Virus record (IMG/VR): IMGVR_UViG_3300042319_002138
Location: 162,304 to 226,303 of that record
Direction: 5' to 3' (one strand)
DNA length: 64,000 nucleotides
Position numbers and translations under genes: made by a program. Every line of letters begins with the position of its first letter. Positions within the stretch are counted from its first letter, which is position 1. Positions 26,365 through 58,388 of this stretch are shown here, piece after piece. Below the pieces are notes generated by a model. It saw only the letters and a list, made by a program, of their open reading frames with translations. It was not told the DNA's origin and did no database searches.

Positions 26365-26394
26365 TTGACAATTTAAAAACTTTTATTATCTTTG
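26365..26394 (+). promoter_or_regulatory. Bacteroidota-type promoter for leader 1 / tRNA cluster 1
   Basis: TTGACA at 26365 and -7 element TATCTTTG at 26387. Confidence 0.75.
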
Positions 26395-26423
26395 TAACAT
26401 ATTTAATTAATAAGAATAAAAAA

Positions 26424-26534
26424 ATGATAACAAATAACATACATATCAGCAATCGTAATCAGTGGTATCAGCCGTGTTTTATTAACAATGGTAAGGGTAT
26501 GTTATGTGTAAATGGAAGTGAGGAAATAATTTAA
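26424..26534 (+). CDS. Leader peptide 1 (36 aa, MITNNIHISNRNQWYQPCFINNGKGMLCVNGSEEII)
   Basis: Short ORF between promoter and terminator; codons mirror tRNA cluster 1. Confidence 0.8.
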   Translation: MITNNIHISNRNQWYQPCFINNGKGMLCVNGSEEII

Positions 26535-26560
26535 TCACAGAAGTAAATAAAAATATAACA

Positions 26561-26590
26561 AACCCAATTCCAAAAGAGTTGGGTTTTTTG
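26561..26590 (+). terminator. Attenuator terminator of tRNA cluster 1
   Basis: AACCCAATTC-caaaa-GAGTTGGGTT plus T-tract; competing pairing 26495-26505 with 26555-26565. Confidence 0.8.
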
Positions 26591-26604: not shown

Positions 26605-26678
26605 CGATGTGTATATCAGTTGGTTAGATAGACACTCTGATAAGGTGTAGGTCGGAGGTTCGAGCCCTCCCACATCGA
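26605..26678 (+). tRNA. tRNA-Ile(GAU)
   Basis: Cloverleaf; anticodon loop CTGATAA. Confidence 0.93.
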
Positions 26679-26718
26679 CAAAAAAGAAAAAGTTCTTTGA
26701 TGTATTGGTATTAGTAAT

Positions 26719-26791
26719 GACTCAGTAGCTCAATTGGTAGAGCTCCACACTGTTAATGTGGCCGTTACAGGTTCAAGTCCTGTCTGAGTCG
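26719..26791 (+). tRNA. tRNA-Asn(GUU)
   Basis: Cloverleaf; loop CTGTTAA. Confidence 0.93.
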
Positions 26792-26794
26792 CTG

Positions 26795-26915
26795 AGGTTG
26801 ATTGGGGAATGATATAACGTTAACGTGTCAGTAGTCGTGGTTATATCGGAGTTGTAACTGTCCGAGTAAAGCCAATCGTAAAAGGGGATGTCCACACAAC
26901 CATCTTCCCCTTTCC
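26795..26915 (+). ncRNA. Candidate structured RNA between tRNA-Asn and tRNA-Tyr
   Basis: GATTGG/CCAATC, GATATAAC/GTTATATC and GGGGATG/CATCTTCC stems. Confidence 0.5.
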
Positions 26916-26921
26916 TAACTT

Positions 26922-27002
26922 GGGAACTGAAAGTCGTTTGGATACGGCAGCGAAACTGTAAATTTCGTCCTCGCGGGAGTGGTTCGAGTCCACCAGGTCC
27001 CA
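26922..27002 (+). tRNA. tRNA-Tyr(GUA), atypical D arm
   Basis: Loop CTGTAAA, T arm GGTTCGAGTCC, acceptor GGGAACT/AGGTCCC. Confidence 0.75.
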
Positions 27003-27070
27003 CAAAAAAAAATAAATGTAATATAAGTGGATTTTAACTCTGTTTGTTATATTTATAATAAAAGAATATT

Positions 27071-27520
27071 ATGAAACAGAGAGAAGTTAAAATTACTGAT
27101 GAAGAAATAAAGTTGGCATATGACAAATACGACACACTACATCAGGCATCCGCAGAATTAAAAATGACTACTGTGTCATTATGGAGAAGGGCAAAAAAAA
27201 TTGGTTTAGCCTGGAAAGATAAAAACTTTAAACCTGAACAACAAAAAATACCTTTAAACGAGATTATAGAAGGTAAACATCCGTACTACCAAACCTTAAA
27301 ATTAAAAAAAAGGTTATTGAAAGAAGGGGTTAAAGAAAATAAGTGTGATATTTGCGGTATAATAGATTGGAATAATATAGAGTTATCAATGCAATTAGAC
27401 CATATTGATGGTGACTCACACAACCACAAATTGGATAATTTAAGGATGGTTTGCCCTAACTGCCATTCACAAACAAACACTTATTGTGGTAAAAATAAAA
27501 AAATCAAAGCGGAAATTTGA
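27071..27520 (+). CDS. HNH homing endonuclease inside tRNA cluster 1
   Basis: 'KCDICG...QLDHIDGDSHNHKLDNLRMVCPNCH'. Confidence 0.9.
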   Translation: MKQREVKITDEEIKLAYDKYDTLHQASAELKMTTVSLWRRAKKIGLAWKDKNFKPEQQKIPLNEIIEGKHPYYQTLKLKKRLLKEGVKENKCDICGIIDWNNIELSMQLDHIDGDSHNHKLDNLRMVCPNCHSQTNTYCGKNKKIKAEI

Positions 27521-27550
27521 AAACAACATGTCTTCCTGTATATTTTATAC

Positions 27551-27622
27551 GCGTCTTTGGTGTAATTGGTAGCACGGCTGGTTCCAACCCAGTCGGTCAG
27601 GGTTCGAGGCCTTGGGGATGTG
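27551..27622 (+). tRNA. tRNA-Trp(CCA)
   Basis: Loop TTCCAAC; G-U-rich acceptor. Confidence 0.8.
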
Positions 27623-27627
27623 CAAAT

Positions 27628-27703
27628 GGTGATGTAGCTCAGTTGGTAGAGCAAAGGACTGAAAATCCTTGTGTCGAAGGTTCAATTCCTTCCATCACCA
27701 CCA
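27628..27703 (+). tRNA. tRNA-Phe(GAA)
   Basis: Loop CTGAAAA; encoded CCA. Confidence 0.95.
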
Positions 27704-27707
27704 TTAT

Positions 27708-27782
27708 AGGGTAATGGACTAATTGGCAAGTCACCACGTTTGGGACGTGGGCATCGTGAGAGTTCGAGTCTCTCTTACCCTA
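27708..27782 (+). tRNA. tRNA-Pro(UGG)
   Basis: Loop TTTGGGA. Confidence 0.9.
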
Positions 27783-27790
27783 CTATACAA

Positions 27791-27863
27791 TGTCCTATGG
27801 TGTAATTGGCAACACGTCGGTTTTTGGTACCGAAGAGTCGAGGTTCGAACCCTTGTGGGACAA
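27791..27863 (+). tRNA. tRNA-Gln(UUG)
   Basis: Loop TTTTGGT. Confidence 0.9.
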
Positions 27864-27869
27864 CAATAT

Positions 27870-27943
27870 GGTGTTTGAAGCATTAAGGTGATGTACTAGT
27901 TTGTGGGACTAGGAAAGACGGGTCGGTACCGTCCTTACACCCA
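27870..27943 (+). tRNA. tRNA-His(GUG), non-canonical T loop
   Basis: Loop TTGTGGG; G-1 extended acceptor; T loop GTCGGTA. Confidence 0.75.
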
Positions 27944-27947
27944 AAAA

Positions 27948-28037
27948 GGAAAGGTGGGTGAGTGGCTAAAACCAACAATCTGCTAAGTTGTCGTACCTGT
28001 AAGGGTACCGAGGGTTCGAATCCCTCCCTTTCCTCCA
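27948..28037 (+). tRNA. tRNA-Ser(GCU)
   Basis: Loop CTGCTAA, long variable arm, CCA. Confidence 0.93.
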
Positions 28038-28040
28038 TAT

Positions 28041-28112
28041 GTGGATGTGATGTAACGGTTAACATGAGACTCTTATACAGTCTTCTCGGTGGTTCAACTC
28101 CACCCATCCATA
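28041..28112 (+). tRNA. tRNA-Ile(UAU)
   Basis: Anticodon arm AGACT-CTTATAC-AGTCT. Confidence 0.8.
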
Positions 28113-28117
28113 CTATT

Positions 28118-28191
28118 ACACTCTTAGCTCAATGGATTAGAGCACAACGTTACGGACGTTGGGGTTGGTGGTTCGAGTCCATCAGAGTGTA
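28118..28191 (+). tRNA. tRNA-Arg(ACG)
   Basis: Loop TTACGGA. Confidence 0.9.
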
Positions 28192-28200
28192 CAATAATAA

Positions 28201-28271
28201 GGCACCATGCCCGAGTGGTTAGGGGTCGGTCTGCAAAACCGCTTACATTGGTTCGAACCCAATTGGTGCCT
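28201..28271 (+). tRNA. tRNA-Cys(GCA)
   Basis: Loop CTGCAAA. Confidence 0.92.
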
Positions 28272-28354
28272 CTATCTTTAATTTCTTTTATATTCAATAT
28301 AGGCCCAAACACCAACAAATATTGGGGTTAGTATAGCAATAACTATTTCTGTAT

Positions 28355-36541: not shown

Positions 36542-36572
36542 TTTGACAATTAATAAACTTTTACTATATTTG
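36542..36572 (+). promoter_or_regulatory. Bacteroidota-type promoter for leader 2 / tRNA cluster 2
   Basis: TTTGACA and TATATTTG; flanking sequence closely resembles the leader-1 promoter. Confidence 0.75.
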
Positions 36573-36614
36573 TACCATATTTAATTAATACGAACAAAAA
36601 TTTTTATAAATTCA

Positions 36615-36716
36615 ATGAAAACAACAATGACATACAAACAAGGGACCGTTAAAACGGTTGATGGGAAAGTGGATTCACTTTTCTACGGACATGGGTTGTC
36701 ATACTGGAGTTGTTGA
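36615..36716 (+). CDS. Leader peptide 2 (33 aa, MKTTMTYKQGTVKTVDGKVDSLFYGHGLSYWSC)
   Basis: Short ORF between promoter and terminator; codons mirror tRNA cluster 2. Confidence 0.8.
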   Translation: MKTTMTYKQGTVKTVDGKVDSLFYGHGLSYWSC

Positions 36717-36741
36717 TTTGAATTTACTCTATATATAGAAT

Positions 36742-36773
36742 AACCCTGGGTCCAAAAGATTCAGGGTTTTTTG
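36742..36773 (+). terminator. Attenuator terminator of tRNA cluster 2
   Basis: AACCCTGGGTC-caaaa-GATTCAGGGTT plus T-tract. Confidence 0.8.
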
Positions 36774-36799
36774 TTCTTTGATATATCGGTTTAAAAAAA

Positions 36800-36889
36800 G
36801 GAAGGGTGGCAGAGTTGGTCTATTGCATCTGATTTGAAATCAGAAGTACCTTTGAAAGGGTACCGTGGGTTCGAATCCTACCTCTTCCT
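36800..36889 (+). tRNA. tRNA-Ser(UGA)
   Basis: Loop TTTGAAA, long variable arm. Confidence 0.93.
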
Positions 36890-36896
36890 CATAAAT

Positions 36897-36968
36897 GGTC
36901 CATTGGTGTAGTGGCCAACATACATCCCTGTCACGGATGTGCCGCGAGTTCGATTCTCGCATGGACCG
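36897..36968 (+). tRNA. tRNA-Asp(GUC)
   Basis: Loop CTGTCAC. Confidence 0.92.
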
Positions 36969-37009
36969 CAACTAACCATAAATCCTAGTAACCCCTAGGT
37001 TGGTTAAAC

Positions 37010-37082
37010 AGTTCCTTAGCTCAGCTGGGAGAGCAACTCGCTTACATCGAGAAGGTCACAGGTTCGAACCCTGTAGGAACTA
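37010..37082 (+). tRNA. tRNA-Val(UAC)
   Basis: Loop CTTACAT. Confidence 0.92.
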
Positions 37083-37091
37083 CAATAAATT

Positions 37092-37166
37092 GCCTCATTA
37101 GCTCAGCTGGCTTAGAGCGTCTGATTTGTACTCAGAAGGCCGTGGGTTCGATTCCTACATGAGGCT
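37092..37166 (+). tRNA. tRNA-Thr(UGU)
   Basis: Loop TTTGTAC. Confidence 0.92.
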
Positions 37167-37228
37167 CAATTAATAACAAACAAATAAAAACGTCAGATTA
37201 TGGAAAGTGGCAAGTATGGCAAACACAA

Positions 37229-37300
37229 TCCCTCGTAGCAAACAAGTGTAGGCAACGGACTTTTAATCCGTGGGGCTGGGAGCGTTACCCGGCGGGGGAA
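37229..37300 (+). tRNA. tRNA-Lys(UUU), non-canonical T loop
   Basis: ACGGA-CTTTTAA-TCCGT; T arm CTGGG-AGCGTTA-CCCGG; 7-bp acceptor. Confidence 0.75.
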
Positions 37301-37308
37301 CAAAACAC

Positions 37309-37378
37309 ACCGAGGCTTAGTGGTAAAGAACTATCTCTCATAAGGATGGTCAAGTGGGTTCAATTCCCATACTCGGTA
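37309..37378 (+). tRNA. tRNA with CAU anticodon (Met or Ile2), short D arm
   Basis: Loop CTCATAA; T arm GTGGG-TTCAATT-CCCAT. Confidence 0.7.
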
Positions 37379-37386
37379 CATTATAT

Positions 37387-37457
37387 TGCGGCAAGGTGTA
37401 ATTGGTTGCATGGGAGTCTCATAAACTTCAGGGGTGGTTCGAGTCCACAGCACGCTA
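37387..37457 (+). tRNA. tRNA with CAU anticodon, imperfect acceptor stem
   Basis: GGAGT-CTCATAA-ACTTC; bulged acceptor. Confidence 0.6.
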
Positions 37458-37462
37458 CTAAT

Positions 37463-37537
37463 GGGGATATAGTTTAATTGGCTAAAACATCTGATTTGCA
37501 TTCAGAAGATGTCTCGGTTCGATTCCGAGTATCTCCA
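37463..37537 (+). tRNA. tRNA-Ala(UGC)
   Basis: Loop TTTGCAT; G3-U70. Confidence 0.92.
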
Positions 37538-37570
37538 CAATAAAATAACAAAAGAAAAAGAAAGAAATTA

Positions 37571-37690
37571 ATGAAGATAGTGTTAACAGGTAAATTAGAA
37601 TCACATAGAGAAATTTTTAGAGGAGAAAGAGAAAAAAATAAATTGATTAAAAGAATAAAAAAATTTATTTTTAAAAGAAAAAACGCTTAA
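37571..37690 (+). CDS. Small basic ORF inside tRNA cluster 2 (39 aa)
   Basis: ATG 37571 to TAA 37690; not in the ORF track. Confidence 0.35.
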   Translation: MKIVLTGKLESHREIFRGEREKNKLIKRIKKFIFKRKNA

Positions 37691-37734
37691 TAGAACAAAG
37701 TACAAGTTCAGGGTGGGGTGCGGTTCCCACAAAT

Positions 37735-37811
37735 GCGGGTGTAGCTCAATTGACTAGAGTACTAGCCTTCCAAGCTGGGAGTTGCGGGTTTGAATCCCGC
37801 CACCCGCTCCA
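37735..37811 (+). tRNA. tRNA-Gly(UCC)
   Basis: Loop CTTCCAA; CCA. Confidence 0.92.
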
Positions 37812-37812
37812 T

Positions 37813-37895
37813 ACGTCAGTGGCGGAATTGGTAGACGCGTTGGTTTTAGGAACCAATATCGTTAAGATGTGGGGGTTCGACTCCCCCCTGACGTA
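37813..37895 (+). tRNA. tRNA-Leu(UAG)
   Basis: Loop TTTAGGA, long variable arm. Confidence 0.93.
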
Positions 37896-37938
37896 CTTTT
37901 ATTTTGCCAATTAAACAATAACCCTTATATTTGTAATT

Positions 37939-42684: not shown

Positions 42685-42924
42685 ATGGAAAAAAGAAGCA
42701 CACATTACGGAGACGTATCAAAATGGATTGAAAAGGTAATTGATTCTTGCGAGACATACCAACAGACATTTACTGTTAAAAAATTGATTAGTAATTTTGC
42801 AAAACAATTAAGAAATAGTGCCCCTGATAAATATTGGAACAGTTATCAATACACAGTTATTTGGCCACTTGAACATAAATTAAAATATAAAAGACAATCA
42901 TTCATAGATAAGATTGGGGAATAA
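42685..42924 (+). CDS. Hypothetical protein
   Basis: TATATTTG promoter upstream. Confidence 0.6.
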   Translation: MEKRSTHYGDVSKWIEKVIDSCETYQQTFTVKKLISNFAKQLRNSAPDKYWNSYQYTVIWPLEHKLKYKRQSFIDKIGE

Positions 42925-43082
42925 TGGGGAATAATGAAATTGAACTAGAAAAAAATTATCTACCCGAATTTATTGACCAATTTGGTGATGGTCCTCTCGG
43001 TGAATTAGACCCTGAAGAATGGGGAGCATTAGAGTTTCTCAGATGGTTAGAAATTAATAATTATAAAATTATAAAAAAATAA
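42924..43082 (+). CDS. Small hypothetical protein (52 aa)
   Basis: ATG overlaps upstream stop; not in the ORF track. Confidence 0.5.
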   Translation: MGNNEIELEKNYLPEFIDQFGDGPLGELDPEEWGALEFLRWLEINNYKIIKK

Positions 43083-43089
43083 TAAATTT

Positions 43090-43236
43090 ATGGAAAATAT
43101 GAAAAGAGTTGATTGGTTTTTGTTAATAATATTTGTAGCAAACTTATGTGCTAGCATTCCATTAGGGTCTTTACCAAACATTCTTGGTTGGTCTTGTGCG
43201 GCAATGGTACAATTAAGAATTTGTTTAACCAAATAA
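43090..43236 (+). CDS. Small membrane protein (48 aa)
   Basis: MENMKRVDWFLLIIFVANLC...; not in the ORF track. Confidence 0.45.
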   Translation: MENMKRVDWFLLIIFVANLCASIPLGSLPNILGWSCAAMVQLRICLTK

Positions 43237-43306
43237 TATAAAAGGTAATAATTGTTAATTACAAAATTTGACTTTTTAAGAAATACAACTATATTTATAA
43301 TATAAA

Positions 43307-43375
43307 ATGAAAAATACGAACATCATATCATTATTAGAAAGATTAGAGAGATTTAGTCTAATGGAGATGGTATGA
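43307..43375 (+). CDS. Leader peptide 3 (22 aa, MKNTNIISLLERLERFSLMEMV)
   Basis: Core codons TTA TTA GAA AGA TTA GAG AGA match downstream Leu(UAA), Glu(UUC) and Arg(UCU). Confidence 0.78.
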   Translation: MKNTNIISLLERLERFSLMEMV

Positions 43376-43396
43376 TTATTTTTTAAATAATATTTT

Positions 43397-43432
43397 AAAA
43401 CCCGTCTCTTAAAACAGATGGGTTTTTTTTTT
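43397..43432 (+). terminator. Attenuator terminator of tRNA cluster 3
   Basis: AAAACCCGTCT-cttaaaac-AGATGGGTTTT plus T-tract. Confidence 0.8.
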
Positions 43433-43486
43433 GAAAAAGATTTGGTAGATTAAAAAAGATTACTTACATTTGTAAGACAAACAACG

Positions 43487-43915
43487 GGGGTAGGAAGTTA
43501 GAGATGAGTGTCCTACTCCCGTGACAAAAAGAAAAAGTTCTTTGACATATTAAAACGGGGACAAGGTAACCACAAACCCACTGGTAATAGGCAGTTCTTG
43601 AGATGGAATGCAAGACAGAACGTAACCCCTACCTTGTTCTTTTTTAAAATATATTGTGGTGGTAAGAAAAGGTGAACTCGTTAAGTTCATAGGCCTGTTG
43701 ACAAAAGATGGTGAAACGAGTGTGGTTGTCGACTACTGCATCACATATATAATACATTGTGTTGTTCCCTTGAGAAAGGAATCAAGAATAAGAGTGGACA
43801 GACTTTAAGCACTACAACACAGAGGACTCAACCTCAAAGAACCTGTACCCTTGAAAAACTCGTTTAAGTAAAGCAGGTTTGCTCCGAAATAAAAGGGTAT
43901 GAGAATAAGGAGTAT
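43487..43915 (+). ncRNA. Tandem array of candidate structured small RNAs
   Basis: Consecutive closed stems: GGGGGTAGGA/TCCTACTCCC, ACAAGGTA/TACCTTGT, TGTGGTG/CATCACA, TGTGTTGT/ACAACACA, and a pseudoknot-like AACCTG/CAGGTT with TACCCTT/AAGGGTA. Confidence 0.55.
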
Positions 43916-43917
43916 TT

Positions 43918-44000
43918 GCTCGGGTGGTGAAATAGGTATACACGTTTGACTTAAAATCAAATTCCCATTGGGAGTGAGGGTTCAAGTCCCTCTCCGAGTA
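43918..44000 (+). tRNA. tRNA-Leu(UAA)
   Basis: TTTGA-CTTAAAA-TCAAA, long variable arm. Confidence 0.92.
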
Positions 44001-44061
44001 CTGTGAAATGAACAACGTCACCACAAGAGTTGTACCTTTATGGTTTTATAATGTGGTATTT

Positions 44062-44133
44062 GGTCCTATCGACTATCGGTTAGGTCGTCAGGTTTTCATC
44101 CTGGAAAGCGGGGTTCGATTCCCCGTAGGACTA
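44062..44133 (+). tRNA. tRNA-Glu(UUC)
   Basis: Loop TTTTCAT. Confidence 0.92.
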
Positions 44134-44216
44134 CAAAAGAGGTGGATACTTTGTACGTAGATAATTTAGTAATATCTTGTCGTAGTGCACCGTTGACGAA
44201 ACCTCTTTTATTTTTG

Positions 44217-44289
44217 GGTCCCGTAGTGTAATGGATTAACATAAGGAGCTTCTACCTCTTTGATTCAGGTTCGAATCCTGACGGGACTA
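44217..44289 (+). tRNA. tRNA-Arg(UCU)
   Basis: Loop CTTCTAC. Confidence 0.9.
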
Positions 44290-44356
44290 CTAAAAAAATA
44301 TTAACTACTAGGTTCGATTTTTAATAAACCTTAAATATTTATTAATAAAATATATT

Positions 44357-44962
44357 ATGAATTTTGAGGAAAAATATAATAAAGAAGAACTTGAGAAGTT
44401 AATTTTTGTTGAGAGTAAGAGTTATCGTGAAATTGGTAAAATTTATGGTGTTAGTGACGCATACATAAAAAAAGTGTGTGGCAGATTAGGGATTAAACTT
44501 AGAAAAAGAAAAAATTTTCCTGAAAATTTTATACCACACAATAAAGGTATGGGTAAAAAAGTTATATGTAAAAATTGTGGTAAAGAAACAAAAAGTTCAC
44601 ACGATAAACAAATATATTGTTCATTTGATTGTAATGTGGAACATAAAAATAAAAATAAATACAAAGATTACTTAGACAATCAAGAAAAATATTGTAATAC
44701 CACATCAGGTTTGCGATGGTTAAAAAAATATTTTTTAATAGACCAAGATAATAAGTGTAATATTTGTGGAATAGATAATTTTTGGAACGGTAAACCATTA
44801 GTTTTTGTTATGGACCATATAAACGGTGATGCTAGTAATAACAAAAGAGATAATCTAAGATTAATATGTCATAATTGTGATTCACAGTTAGACACATACA
44901 AATCTAAAAATAAGAATTCAGCAAGGAAAGAAAGATATTTGTTAAACTACAAAAATATTTAA
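44357..44962 (+). CDS. HNH homing endonuclease inside tRNA cluster 3
   Basis: 'KCNICG...VMDHINGDASNNKRDNLRLICHNCD'; N-terminal CxxC module. Confidence 0.9.
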   Translation: MNFEEKYNKEELEKLIFVESKSYREIGKIYGVSDAYIKKVCGRLGIKLRKRKNFPENFIPHNKGMGKKVICKNCGKETKSSHDKQIYCSFDCNVEHKNKNKYKDYLDNQEKYCNTTSGLRWLKKYFLIDQDNKCNICGIDNFWNGKPLVFVMDHINGDASNNKRDNLRLICHNCDSQLDTYKSKNKNSARKERYLLNYKNI

Positions 44963-45177
44963 AATAAACGAGAAAGAGATACTCGTAGGGTTTTTAAGTA
45001 TCCCTCAAAACTTAACGGAGCTGGTACCACCACGTCAAGGGGTACTCGTTGGGAATCGGAAGGAAGACTCTCCTATCCCCCAAGTAAGAGTTGACTTTTA
45101 AGTGGTAAGACACGTTGGGTTTTGAAATAGAAAAACTGTGAATATCTACTCACCATTAATCTCAGGTGGGGAAACAT

Positions 45178-45283
45178 AGTCAGGTGGCGGAATTGGTTAG
45201 ACGCTAAATTAACGAGTGGATAGTGTGCCATTGGGGAAGGGCCAAGAAAGTTACACATACAGGTTCAAGTCCTGTCCTGACTA
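45178..45283 (+). ncRNA. tRNA-like RNA (Leu-type D arm, T arm, acceptor AGTCAGG/CCTGACT) lacking a canonical anticodon arm
   Basis: TGGCGGAATTGGTTAGACGC ... ACAGGTTCAAGTCCTGT; the middle does not form a 5-bp stem with 7-nt loop. Confidence 0.7.
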
Positions 45284-45300
45284 CAAAAAAATAAAAAATT

Positions 45301-45549
45301 ATGGAAAATAAAGAAACATACCAAATGGTGAATTATGATGGTGATAGTTACGACAGTAAGATCCCTGTGGAATTAGTTGAGTCGTTCCTTAAAATGAAAG
45401 AACTAATGGAACAGGTGTCTAATGGGAAATATTATTGTACACCAAGTATGTATTATACAGATGAATTGGAAGGTGTTTCAGTAGGTATAGTTGAGGTTAA
45501 TGGTGACGGGACACATATTAAAACACCATTTAGTTTAATTATCAAATAA
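45301..45549 (+). CDS. Hypothetical protein
   Basis: ORF between the two tRNA-like RNAs. Confidence 0.55.
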   Translation: MENKETYQMVNYDGDSYDSKIPVELVESFLKMKELMEQVSNGKYYCTPSMYYTDELEGVSVGIVEVNGDGTHIKTPFSLIIK

Positions 45550-45554
45550 AAAAT

Positions 45555-45635
45555 AGTCAGGTGGCGAAATGGTGACGCCTAAATGAGACCCGTGGGGCGA
45601 AAAGACTCTCGTAGGTTCAAATCCTGTCCTGACTA
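45555..45635 (+). ncRNA. Second tRNA-like RNA with identical acceptor AGTCAGG/CCTGACT and no anticodon arm
   Basis: TGGCGAAATGGTGACGC ... GTAGGTTCAAATCCTGT. Confidence 0.7.
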
Positions 45636-45640
45636 ATTTA

Positions 45641-45714
45641 GGTCCTTTAGCTCAGTCGGTTAGAGCAACAGACTCATAATCTGTGGGTCCACGGTTCGAG
45701 CCCGTGAAGGACCA
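45641..45714 (+). tRNA. tRNA(CAU), probably Ile2 (lysidine type)
   Basis: ACAGA-CTCATAA-TCTGT; body resembles bacterial Ile2. Confidence 0.8.
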
Positions 45715-45797
45715 CAATCCCTTTGTATTGACAAGGGGATTTTTATTTTGATATTTAAAAATAATTCCTTATCTTTGTAGAAATAAAATAAGGGACT

Positions 45798-46199
45798 ATG
45801 ATTTTTGAGTATACACAACCAAAGGGAATTGAGGATATCAGATGTAATAAAGACTGTATGGTCAGGGCTGTAGCAAATATCACAAAAGAAAATTATTCTA
45901 AGGTTCATAAACTTATGTATGGTCATGGTTGGAGAGCCTCTAGAAAATCATCTAAAGGTAATTGGGAAGACCAAGTAACAAAGACTTTGGACGACTTGGG
46001 TGTTAAGTGGGAAAGAATTTCGTTCCCTGGAGTTAAGGGTCAAAAAAGAATGACAGCTAAGGAATTGGTGGAAATGGACCCTAACGGTAAATATATCATC
46101 AGAATTACCAAACATGTTGCCGCATTGGATGGTGGTAAGTTATTGGATACTTGGGATTGTTCTGATAAGTGTGTTTATTTTGTATGGAAAATTAAATAA
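45798..46199 (+). CDS. Hypothetical phage protein
   Basis: 'DCMVRAVA' and 'HVAALDGG..DTWDC' motifs; TATCTTTG promoter. Confidence 0.65.
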   Translation: MIFEYTQPKGIEDIRCNKDCMVRAVANITKENYSKVHKLMYGHGWRASRKSSKGNWEDQVTKTLDDLGVKWERISFPGVKGQKRMTAKELVEMDPNGKYIIRITKHVAALDGGKLLDTWDCSDKCVYFVWKIK

Positions 46200-49804: not shown

Positions 49805-49913
49805 ACACAAGTGGTGAAATTGGTAAACACGGGGTGTAACAACTCTGACCGAAAATAATCTACCTTCGGGTCGATAAAAGTAGGTTTTGGAGGTTCGAAT
49901 CCTTCTTTGTGTA
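49805..49913 (+). ncRNA. tRNA-like RNA with aberrant anticodon arm and expanded variable region
   Basis: Acceptor ACACAAG/TTTGTGT, D arm TGGTGAAATTGGTAAACAC, T arm GGAGGTTCGAATCCTTC. Confidence 0.65.
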
Positions 49914-50002
49914 CACTAATCACATAGTATCACTATCATTATCTAGTGAGTAAATAGTAGAGTAAATCTACAGCTATGTGATAAAGTTCTTTGAAATAAT
50001 AC

Positions 50003-50292
50003 ATATAAGTGGCGGAATTGGTAGACGCTTACGTTTGAAAAGAGAGTAAGGTTAGATTGGGAGTTCTGTAAAAGCCTAAAAGACCTTAGATTTAGCTAAT
50101 CTTGGTGGTCTATAATCAGACTGGTCAAGAGGTTTGGTTACGGTACTCTTTAAAAACCAACTGTAACAAGTTATATAGATAGATTTAATAATATGATAGA
50201 ATTAAATCCTTAGACTCTTGTAAAATGTATGGACTGAAAGAAACCTAGTTTTGAATAAGTTCGTGGAGGTTCGAATCCTCCCTTATATACCA
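50003..50292 (+). ncRNA. 290-nt RNA with tRNA ends (acceptor, D arm, T arm, CCA) and an insert of about 235 nt
   Basis: ATATAAG-TGGCGGAATTGGTAGACGC ... GGAGGTTCGAATCCTCC-CTTATAT-ACCA. Confidence 0.75.
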
Positions 50293-50297
50293 TATAT

Positions 50298-50370
50298 TGT
50301 GGGATGGAGAAGTTGGTATCTCAGCAGGCTCATAACCTGAAGGCCGCTGGTTCGAGTCCAGCTCCCGCTA
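50298..50370 (+). tRNA. tRNA-Met(CAU), initiator-like
   Basis: Loop CTCATAA; mismatched 1:72 pair. Confidence 0.85.
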
Positions 50371-50376
50371 CTAATA

Positions 50377-50419: not shown

Positions 50420-50563
50420 CTTTTAACCCCACCGTTGGAAACAACGGGACCCTCTAGTTCTCAGGTTCTAGAGTTTTACGCCCCACACCGATTTCGAATA
50501 AGTGTGGGGTTTTTTATTGACAAAATTTAAATCTGTATTATATTTATAATAAAAAAATAAAAT

Positions 50564-57944: not shown

Positions 57945-57995
57945 TTTGATTATTTAATATTTATTCTTATATTTGTAAGAGTTCTTTGAATTATT

Positions 57996-58388
57996 GGGGG
58001 TGTTTTTGGATTTGACTGGTTAACGATTGGTAATGGGTAAGCATGTCGTGAAATAATACTATCACGTTAATACACGTATTGAAACTTCAAACGGCGACGT
58101 ATTCGCAAACGCAACTGTAGGTCACTTTGTGACTGAAGGTGCAACAGTAGCTGCCTAATCATATTAGGTGTTACTACGGGGTCGGCAGACATATAACCTA
58201 GCAACAGAAGTCGTAGTTGTGGTGGATTATCATTGAACCCAAAATCGAATGATACCCATTGTTTGTTGATTTACAATGGTAAATAATAAATCAAATATTT
58301 TGTCCATTTAGATTAAAATGGAATAAGCATGTAGAAGACGTTAGTAATGTAACGCAGGACGAGGGTTCGAAACCCTCCACCTCCACCA
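57996..58388 (+). ncRNA. ssrA: tmRNA
   Basis: GGGGGTG/CACCTCC-ACCA acceptor with G3-U70, T arm GAGGGTTCGAAACCCTC, tag ORF 58093-58158 GDVFANATVGHFVTEGATVAA*. Confidence 0.92.

Follow-up and report, generated by a model that had tools for sequence, protein, structure and literature searches.

A probable leader-peptide transcription attenuator ahead of a tRNA operon in a large phage genome

Results

Promoter, short ORF and terminator lie ahead of each of three tRNA clusters

We analysed a stretch of 64,000 nt (positions 162,304-226,303 of IMGVR_UViG_3300042319_002138, one strand), which is called the window below. The window has a G+C content of about 31%, nearly all of its genes lie on the + strand, and it contains 24 tRNA genes and one tmRNA. 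DNA identical to the window was found solely in uncultured viral contigs, with sizes up to 226 kb. The nearest cultured relative of one neighbouring protein belongs to Flavobacterium phage FL-1 (45% identity), and the promoters of the window match the Bacteroidota pattern TTTG-N19-21-TAnnTTTG. The window is thus a piece of a large phage genome, probably with a host from the Bacteroidota. Three tRNA clusters are present, each with an upstream region that consists of promoter, short ORF and terminator:

26367-26590: candidate attenuator 1, with promoter, leader ORF (26424-26534) and terminator (about 26560-26590)
26605-28272: tRNA cluster 1, 11 tRNA species
36542-36774: candidate attenuator 2, with promoter (36542-36572), leader ORF (36615-36716) and terminator (36742-36768)
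36800-37896: tRNA cluster 2
43918-44290, + strand: tRNA cluster 3, with tRNAs Leu(UAA), Glu(UUC) and Arg(UCU)
43918-44001, + strand: tRNA-Leu(UAA), anticodon taa, first proposed target gene
44062-44134, + strand: tRNA-Glu(UUC), anticodon ttc, second proposed target gene
44217-44290, + strand: tRNA-Arg(UCU), anticodon tct, third proposed target gene
45641 and 50298: CAU tRNAs outside the three clusters

Between tRNA-Arg and the next tRNAs lies an ORF of 201 aa (44357-44962). Its DNA matches genes of crAss-like and other phages that are annotated as HNH endonucleases, which makes it a likely homing endonuclease gene within the tRNA region. Several tRNA-like genes were overlooked by ARAGORN (45178-45283, 45555-45635, 49805-49913 and 50001-50295). 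Two of these are paralogous to each other; their acceptor, D and T arms look normal, and a stretch of 24 nt or 47 nt replaces the anticodon arm; one is an Rfam tRNA match of 109 nt, and one resembles a tRNA split by about 200 nt. The CAU tRNA at 50298-50371 has a mismatch at position 1/72 (T opposite T), as in initiator tRNAs. No tRNA-His was found in the window; relatives do encode one. The tmRNA (57945-58388 including its promoter) matches Rfam with 99 bits, encodes the tag ANATVGHFVTEGATVAA and has its own full-consensus promoter (57945-57975).

The leader ORF ahead of cluster 3 carries a run of codons read by the cluster 3 tRNAs

The last protein ORFs upstream of cluster 3 are located at 42924-43236, and the terminator of leader 3 is found 160 nt beyond them. 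The following elements make up the leader region:

43267-43297, + strand: leader promoter (TTTG 43267-43270, N19, TATATTTA 43290-43297)
43307-43375, + strand: leader ORF, 22 codons (MKNTNIISLLERLERFSLMEMV), ATG at 43307, TGA at 43373-43375
43331-43351, + strand: predicted sensor run, codons 9-15, TTA TTA GAA AGA TTA GAG AGA (LLERLER)
43397-43432, + strand: intrinsic terminator, 5′ arm 43397-43407, 3′ arm 43416-43426, 11 pairs, T-run

The leader promoter has the Bacteroidota -33/-7 layout with the final G replaced by A. A preliminary description of this DNA had assigned it to another promoter class, and it does carry the TATATTTA box instead of TAnnTTTG. It can alternatively be parsed as TTGACT-N16-TATATT, and a protein gene at 50517 has a promoter of the same class (TTGAC-N17-TATATTTAT). 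Relatives carry a homologous leader promoter, but the distance from the -7 box to the ATG is 9 nt here and about 29 nt there, which makes the 5′ UTR about 20 nt shorter. Since the -7 box lies just 9 nt before the ATG, the mRNA of leader 3 would be nearly leaderless; a Shine-Dalgarno sequence is absent. Neither an Rfam leader family nor a T-box was found, at the gathering threshold in the whole window or with E <= 1 in 43200-45800.

The leader ORF was proposed earlier for 43307-43375. It is indeed present there, as the sole + strand ORF of at least 20 aa within 43268-43475. Sequence and tRNA genes confirm that codons 9-15 are exclusively TTA, GAA/GAG and AGA and match the next three tRNAs, as had been noticed: all seven are read by cluster 3 tRNAs and all three species are represented, while codons read by these tRNAs make up 16% of the codons in the long ORFs of the genome. 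In a Monte Carlo test with 21-codon ORFs sampled from the codon usage of the genome, a run of at least seven Leu-UAA/Glu/Arg-UCU codons had p = 4.4e-5. In all six frames of the window this is the longest run of such codons and the sole run of seven. This AT-rich genome uses TTA, AGA and GAA by default, and thus the signal in leader 3 lies in the choice of amino acids and not of synonymous codons.

The three codons that follow the run (FSL) do not match cluster 3, and the equivalent positions in relatives do not track the tRNA content, which fits a spacer between the sensor and the antiterminator strand described below. If a ribosome is assumed to cover about 14 nt 3′ of its A site, the run would end approximately where the 3′ edge of a stalled ribosome starts to cover this strand. 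The preliminary description had further assigned the ATA and ATG codons of the leader to the CAU tRNA at 45641. This part is weak: one CAU tRNA cannot read both codons, and the reader of ATA, tRNA-Ile(UAU), is encoded within cluster 1. The CAU tRNA at 45641 is on the + strand like the cluster 3 tRNAs, has a paired G1-C72 and lacks three consecutive G-C pairs in the anticodon stem; it looks like an elongator or Ile2 type tRNA.

The leaders of the other two clusters show the same kind of match. Leader 1 has 24 of 35 codons that are read by cluster 1 tRNAs, with a run of 15 and all 11 tRNA species represented (p = 3e-6), and its run is the longest of cluster 1 codons in the six frames of the window. 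For leader 2 and cluster 2 the numbers are 21 of 32 codons and a run of 13 (p = 3e-4). The leader-by-cluster matrix is diagonal, with runs of only 1-4 for mismatched leaders and clusters. In split codon families, leaders 1 and 2 take the family that is read by the isoacceptor of their own cluster; their choices include AGC (1% of the Ser codons of the genome) and CGT (12% of the Arg codons). Leader 2 has no Ala codon although cluster 2 contains a tRNA-Ala.

The leader ORF is conserved in related viral contigs

With the tRNA-Leu(UAA) DNA and the leader start as baits, we collected 38 distinct versions of the attenuator from related uncultured viral contigs (alignment A1). An SPFH-like neighbour gene used as bait gave 80 loci, most of them without nearby tRNAs. 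In the 38 homologues, start and stop codons of the leader ORF are in aligned columns and the only indels are of 3, 3 and 6 nt. Some variants differ at third positions only, for instance GGA/GGC/GGT. The aligned ends, the indels in multiples of three and the third-position differences show that the ORF is under coding constraint. The N-terminus MKN(L/T)(H/N)I is conserved. Terminator pairing is retained in 99.2% of the cells of the alignment, and in many relatives the terminator is located 28-90 nt ahead of tRNA-Leu(UAA), which is the plain arrangement that an attenuator would have.

Beyond these contigs, 185,579 reference genomes were scanned for the conserved leader start, which gave 97 stretches and no true leader plus terminator; one stretch lies near the end of its locus and is prone to being filtered out. 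Two cultured Bacteroidota phages with similar tRNAs, Flavobacterium phage immuto and Bacteroides phage DAC19, do not have a leader plus terminator before their tRNAs.

The end of the leader ORF can pair with the terminator arm

The preliminary description had pointed to a pairing of 8 bp between 43363-43370 and 43402-43409. This pairing is present (GGAGATGG with CCGTCTCT, including two G-U pairs). The segment 43402-43409 in the region of the terminator 5′ arm doubles as the antiterminator partner, and the two pairings are mutually exclusive. The antiterminator duplex plus flanks has a folding energy of -11.7 kcal/mol, which was matched by 13 of 1000 shuffled leaders (p ~0.013). Across the 38 distinct homologues 96.1% of the cells are paired, and both sides have changed at four of the eight pairs (18 cells), in covariation counts that include closely related sequences and therefore overstate the number of independent events. 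None of 500 shuffles equalled this result, and pairings slid along the alignment reached 45-68%. One of the pairs is U-A in 20 sequences and G-C in 14. This switch costs a change of the codon from Met to Arg, which suggests that selection acts here on the RNA pairing and not on the peptide.

Minimum-energy folds of the full-length RNA always contained the terminator, with or without ribosome masks, and thus the switch must be a kinetic one. For a co-transcriptional fold, the RNA was cut before the terminator 3′ arm and a ribosome footprint was placed on the sensor codons. Under this constraint the minimum-energy fold is the antiterminator pairing, in the window and in all six homologues that were folded. 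The window contains in addition a leader hairpin:

43308-43336, + strand: region 1, 5′ strand of the leader hairpin, pairs with 43362-43385; apical hairpin 43340-43359
43362-43385, + strand: region 2, 3′ strand of the leader hairpin, contains GGAGATGG and the stop codon

The leader hairpin has a folding energy of -21 kcal/mol (z = -4.9; 0 of 200 shuffles). In the absence of a ribosome it would hold the antiterminator strand, and together with antiterminator and terminator it completes a predicted trp-like 1:2 / 2:3 / 3:4 layout. Its helix is not predicted in the relatives that were folded, where the untranslated RNA forms the antiterminator.

Two non-homologous attenuators of relatives, with unrelated terminator stems (L072 and L006), also have a matching strand inside the ORF (p = 0.002 and 0.013). 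In the window, leaders 1 and 2 gave no significant result in this simple duplex test, and neither did one leader of a large cluster.

Leader codons covary with the tRNA content of the downstream cluster

In relatives, homologous leaders lie immediately 5′ of tRNA-Leu(UAA). Leaders with the sequence LLGADLEAGD are followed by Leu, Gly, Ala, Glu and Asp tRNAs, those with LLIGGDLAE by Leu, Ile-UAU, Gly, Glu and Asp tRNAs, and leaders of the type SLRGLA... by clusters containing Arg-UCU. The association was analysed for Arg in 25 non-redundant pairs of leader and cluster for which 3 kb or more of sequence was available downstream. AGR sensor codons and a downstream tRNA-Arg(UCU) occur together (counts 7/1/1/16; Fisher p = 1e-4). 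AGA codons are found at three leader positions that are not homologous, which suggests separate gains. Among the 25 leaders, that of the window is the only one without Gly and Asp codons, and its cluster is the only one without those tRNAs. A second family of leaders, located ahead of clusters of 11-17 tRNAs, carries complementary amino acids and has almost no Gly, Ala, Asp and Glu codons. Not every codon follows this rule: Ala codons are untracked, since 21 leaders contain them and no tRNA-Ala is seen in the clusters behind these leaders, and Thr, Ser and Phe codons located beyond the run are likewise not tied to the downstream tRNAs in the 25 leaders.

Genomes with at least two leaders allow an internal comparison. 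Here the match of a leader averaged 0.56 with its own cluster and 0.20 with the other cluster, and it was higher with its own in 18 of 21 leaders. Leu, Ser and Arg codons that are read solely by the isoacceptor of the leader's own cluster were found 69 times, those read solely by that of the other cluster five times. Related sequences are among these counts, which are thus not numbers of independent events.

In some relatives leader, terminator and tRNAs are no longer found together. The closest divergent relative (L081) is approximately 90% identical to the window over 43475-43748, and its cluster 3 has the same promoter, modules and tRNAs, but neither leader nor terminator. L081 still keeps the cluster 1 leader, although most of the cluster 1 tRNAs are replaced by an endonuclease-like ORF (variant regions of L081: 3528-4868 and 12289-12400, reverse strand). 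In L158 (465-600) the leader is kept, the terminator is deleted and a tRNA with the anticodon CUA lies downstream. The overall fit is thus strong, though imperfect, and evolving lineages have evidently acquired the attenuator, lost it or had it parted from its genes.

A second promoter and a structured spacer lie between terminator and tRNA-Leu

In the window the terminator and tRNA-Leu are 486 nt apart. This interval contains a second promoter, followed by about 440 nt of structured RNA:

43441-43472, + strand: second promoter with full consensus (TTTG 43441-43444, N20, TACATTTG 43465-43472)
43476-43917, + strand: non-coding spacer, with modules that are conserved to 75-95% in relatives, where their order differs and a tRNA usually follows directly
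43484-43522, + strand: spacer 5′ hairpin
43550-43647, + strand: long stem ending in U6 (z = -3.1), an optional insertion of about 97 nt

A promoter-like element had been noticed earlier at about 43465-43472, after the terminator, and it turned out to be part of this complete second promoter, which is a likely source of basal, unattenuated transcription. The cassette of the second promoter recurs several times in related loci. Promoters between terminator and tRNA-Leu are common in relatives that have intact attenuators, and pairing a basal promoter with an attenuated one upstream of it therefore seems to be part of the normal design.

The spacer also holds the motif GTTCTTTGACATATT (43537) and two further conserved segments. 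One spacer segment is protein-like on translation, but has no start codon. No Rfam family and no ARAGORN match was found in 43432-43917. Since the spacer is located between terminator and tRNA-Leu, read-through transcripts must cross all of it to reach the tRNAs, and the long stem plus U6 (43550-43645) could itself terminate transcription.

The motif GTTCTTTGAnATATT has five + strand matches in the window (26692, 36773, 43537, 49986 and 57981), with 0.56 expected. The majority of them precede, by 15-27 nt, the 5′ end of a tRNA, of the tmRNA or of a structured RNA (43557). In relatives it is found directly after the T-run of the attenuator, and at the tmRNA its position is the one expected for the start of the transcript. 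The motif may be a shared 5′ leader of the precursors or a processing signal.

Discussion

A probable tRNA-sensing attenuator

The element ahead of cluster 3 probably controls a phage tRNA operon by ribosome-mediated attenuation of transcription at a leader-peptide ORF. That such an attenuator would sense tRNAs Leu(UAA), Glu(UUC) and Arg(UCU) was proposed in the preliminary description, and this predicted function is now supported by four independent lines, namely by an exceptional run of cluster-specific codons, by covariation of leader codons with tRNA content, by compensatory changes in the pairing and by the footprint-constrained fold. What has been computed is the set of parts, the statistics and comparisons that back them and the way in which the pairings exclude each other. 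Translation of the leader, coupling of transcription and translation, a response to tRNA supply and any read-through as far as the tRNAs of this locus are inferred. On the strength of codon statistics, gene-content covariation and compensatory changes, we consider it quite likely that the element works as a tRNA-sensing attenuator. Our confidence is higher for the family as a whole than for the element in this copy, and it is lower for the claim that read-through adds much to the tRNA output of this genome, since the second promoter and about 440 nt of structured RNA with a stem-U6 intervene, and read-through may add little or not arrive.

According to the proposed mechanism, transcription would start from the promoter at 43267-43297, and a ribosome would translate the 22-codon leader while the RNA polymerase advances. 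If charged Leu(UAA), Glu(UUC) and Arg(UCU) tRNAs from host and phage are plentiful, the ribosome would reach the last codons and the stop codon. There it would cover GGAGAUGG (43363-43370), the terminator hairpin (43397-43426) would form and the transcript would end at the U-run. If any of the three tRNAs is limiting, the ribosome would stall within codons 9-15, which would open the leader hairpin and leave GGAGAUGG free. The free strand would pair with 43402-43409 and block the terminator, and the polymerase would continue toward the tRNA genes. The tRNA products would then relieve the stall, which amounts to negative feedback on decoding capacity, with a basal tRNA level provided by the second promoter at 43441-43472.

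Alternative explanations

The alternative that survives best, which we consider unlikely though clearly the most serious one, is that the attenuator family is real but this copy is a decoupled relic. Cluster 3 would then be transcribed only from 43441-43472 or from promoters further downstream, and the leader would end a short transcript or at most feed the small structured RNA at 43479-43645. The architecture of the locus gives this some weight: the promoter after the terminator has full consensus, the stem plus U6 at 43550-43645 could halt read-through, tRNA-Leu is 486 nt away from the terminator and not 28-90 nt as in many relatives, and the 5′ UTR has been shortened by about 20 nt. L081 moreover manages without the attenuator. 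Yet a promoter in this position is common among relatives with intact attenuators, and the leader is re-tuned exactly to its own cluster, with LLERLER and no Gly or Asp codons, which is unique among the 25 leaders. Frame, antiterminator and terminator are intact, and the predicted protective leader hairpin is strongly non-random. The re-tuned codons together with the intact parts and this hairpin argue for continuing selection in this lineage.

It is very improbable that the locus serves foremost to make a trans-acting product, either the terminated leader RNA as an sRNA or the 22-aa peptide, comparable to rnTrpL and peTrpL, and that it regulates the downstream genes only in second place. Trans functions of attenuator-derived sRNAs and leader peptides are described for Sinorhizobium (PMC6614838, PMC7298713), which provides a precedent, and the conserved N-terminus MKN(L/T)(H/N)I would suit a functional peptide. 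The middle of the peptide is, however, rewritten between relatives in step with the tRNA content, and the C-terminal change from Met to Arg preserves the RNA pairing, which is not how a functional peptide would be expected to vary. There is no evident target, and a trans function would be compatible with attenuation and not exclusive of it.

Finally, an ordinary terminator of the upstream genes (42924-43236) with a chance short ORF and no sensing might be proposed from the 160 nt between the last upstream protein ORF and the terminator, from the abundance of short ORFs in AT-rich DNA and from promoter-like matches that are no commoner than in shuffled sequence, but this reading, the least probable of all, is made very unlikely by a run with p = 4e-5 that is unique in six frames, the same design at three of three clusters, a frame kept in 38 homologues, leader codons that covary with tRNA content and compensatory covariation that links the 3′ end of the ORF with the terminator arm.

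Comparison with known systems

Leader-peptide attenuators are classic for the amino acid operons of enterobacteria (trp, his, leu, thr, ilv and pheA). The element described here resembles them in having a short ORF close to the promoter that holds regulatory codons in a run, in its intrinsic terminator and in an antiterminator that shares the terminator 5′ arm and would be covered once a ribosome reaches the ORF end. It also shares a kinetic competition, with the terminator as the more stable of the competing structures, and in the window a predicted hairpin of the 1:2 type. It differs from them in that tRNA genes and not enzymes would be controlled, so that the product would relieve the stall directly. 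Rather than repeating a single amino acid, the run combines codons for three tRNAs, and in the sister family for as many as 17, and its codon set shifts with the tRNA content. Furthermore, the element is phage-borne, has a Bacteroidota-type promoter, lacks a Shine-Dalgarno sequence and is nearly leaderless as predicted. The Trp, His, Leu, Thr and Phe leaders of Rfam do not match here, and the downstream genes are tRNA genes and not biosynthetic ones.

The pheM leader attenuator controls pheST, the genes for phenylalanyl-tRNA synthetase. It is similar in controlling a component of the decoding machinery and in reading the supply of charged tRNA, but it is cellular, responds to a single amino acid and has a synthetase as target. 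The tRNA-Phe genes of E. coli, a possible precedent, were rejected as such: pheV and pheU of MG1655 have neither a leader ORF nor an attenuator. T-box riboswitches bind uncharged tRNA via a specifier codon and the T-box sequence and do not need translation. Like the element proposed here they sense tRNA status and set terminator read-through by an alternative antiterminator; in contrast to them, the present locus has a conserved ORF and no T-box motif or Rfam match.

The tRNA cluster of phage T4, which is interspersed with co-transcribed small stable RNAs and homing-endonuclease genes, resembles the window in this mixture of tRNAs with small structured RNAs and homing-endonuclease genes; it is not known to have a leader-peptide attenuator. 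The leaderless polycysteine sORF attenuators of mycobacteria (bioRxiv 10.1101/834739) are similar in that a short ORF at or near the 5′ end senses decoding for a downstream operon. Those sORFs sense Cys only, precede protein-coding operons and belong to another phylum.

In the literature that we searched, leader-peptide attenuation of tRNA genes is not described, which is an absence there and not a proof of novelty. In the structural respects that can be tested, the predicted anatomy is that of a leader-peptide attenuator; new are the tRNA genes as target and the mixed-codon sensor.

Implications for phage tRNAs

tRNA genes are usually regarded as promoter-controlled, and the reason why phages carry them is debated. 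Proposals include the compensation of codon usage and the replacement of tRNAs that are destroyed by host defences (e.g., PMC10264068). We consider it fairly likely that a clade of large uncultured phages, probably of Flavobacteriia or other Bacteroidota, keeps its tRNA operons under attenuators in which the leader is a codon "barcode" for the tRNAs that follow it, makes tRNAs on demand only and rewrites the barcode as the genes move between operons. If this is true, it would be the first attenuation of tRNA genes, a textbook mechanism would gain a new class of targets, and the leader would be a natural multi-input sensor of decoding capacity. Such a compact, re-programmable sensor of chosen tRNAs would also be of use for synthetic biology. 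The phage would gauge the decoding of its host codon by codon and regulate its tRNAs by demand. L081 and L158 are natural variants that are suited to testing the attenuator model. The tRNAs that become limiting during infection would be readable from the leaders, and the debate about phage tRNAs would become an experiment.
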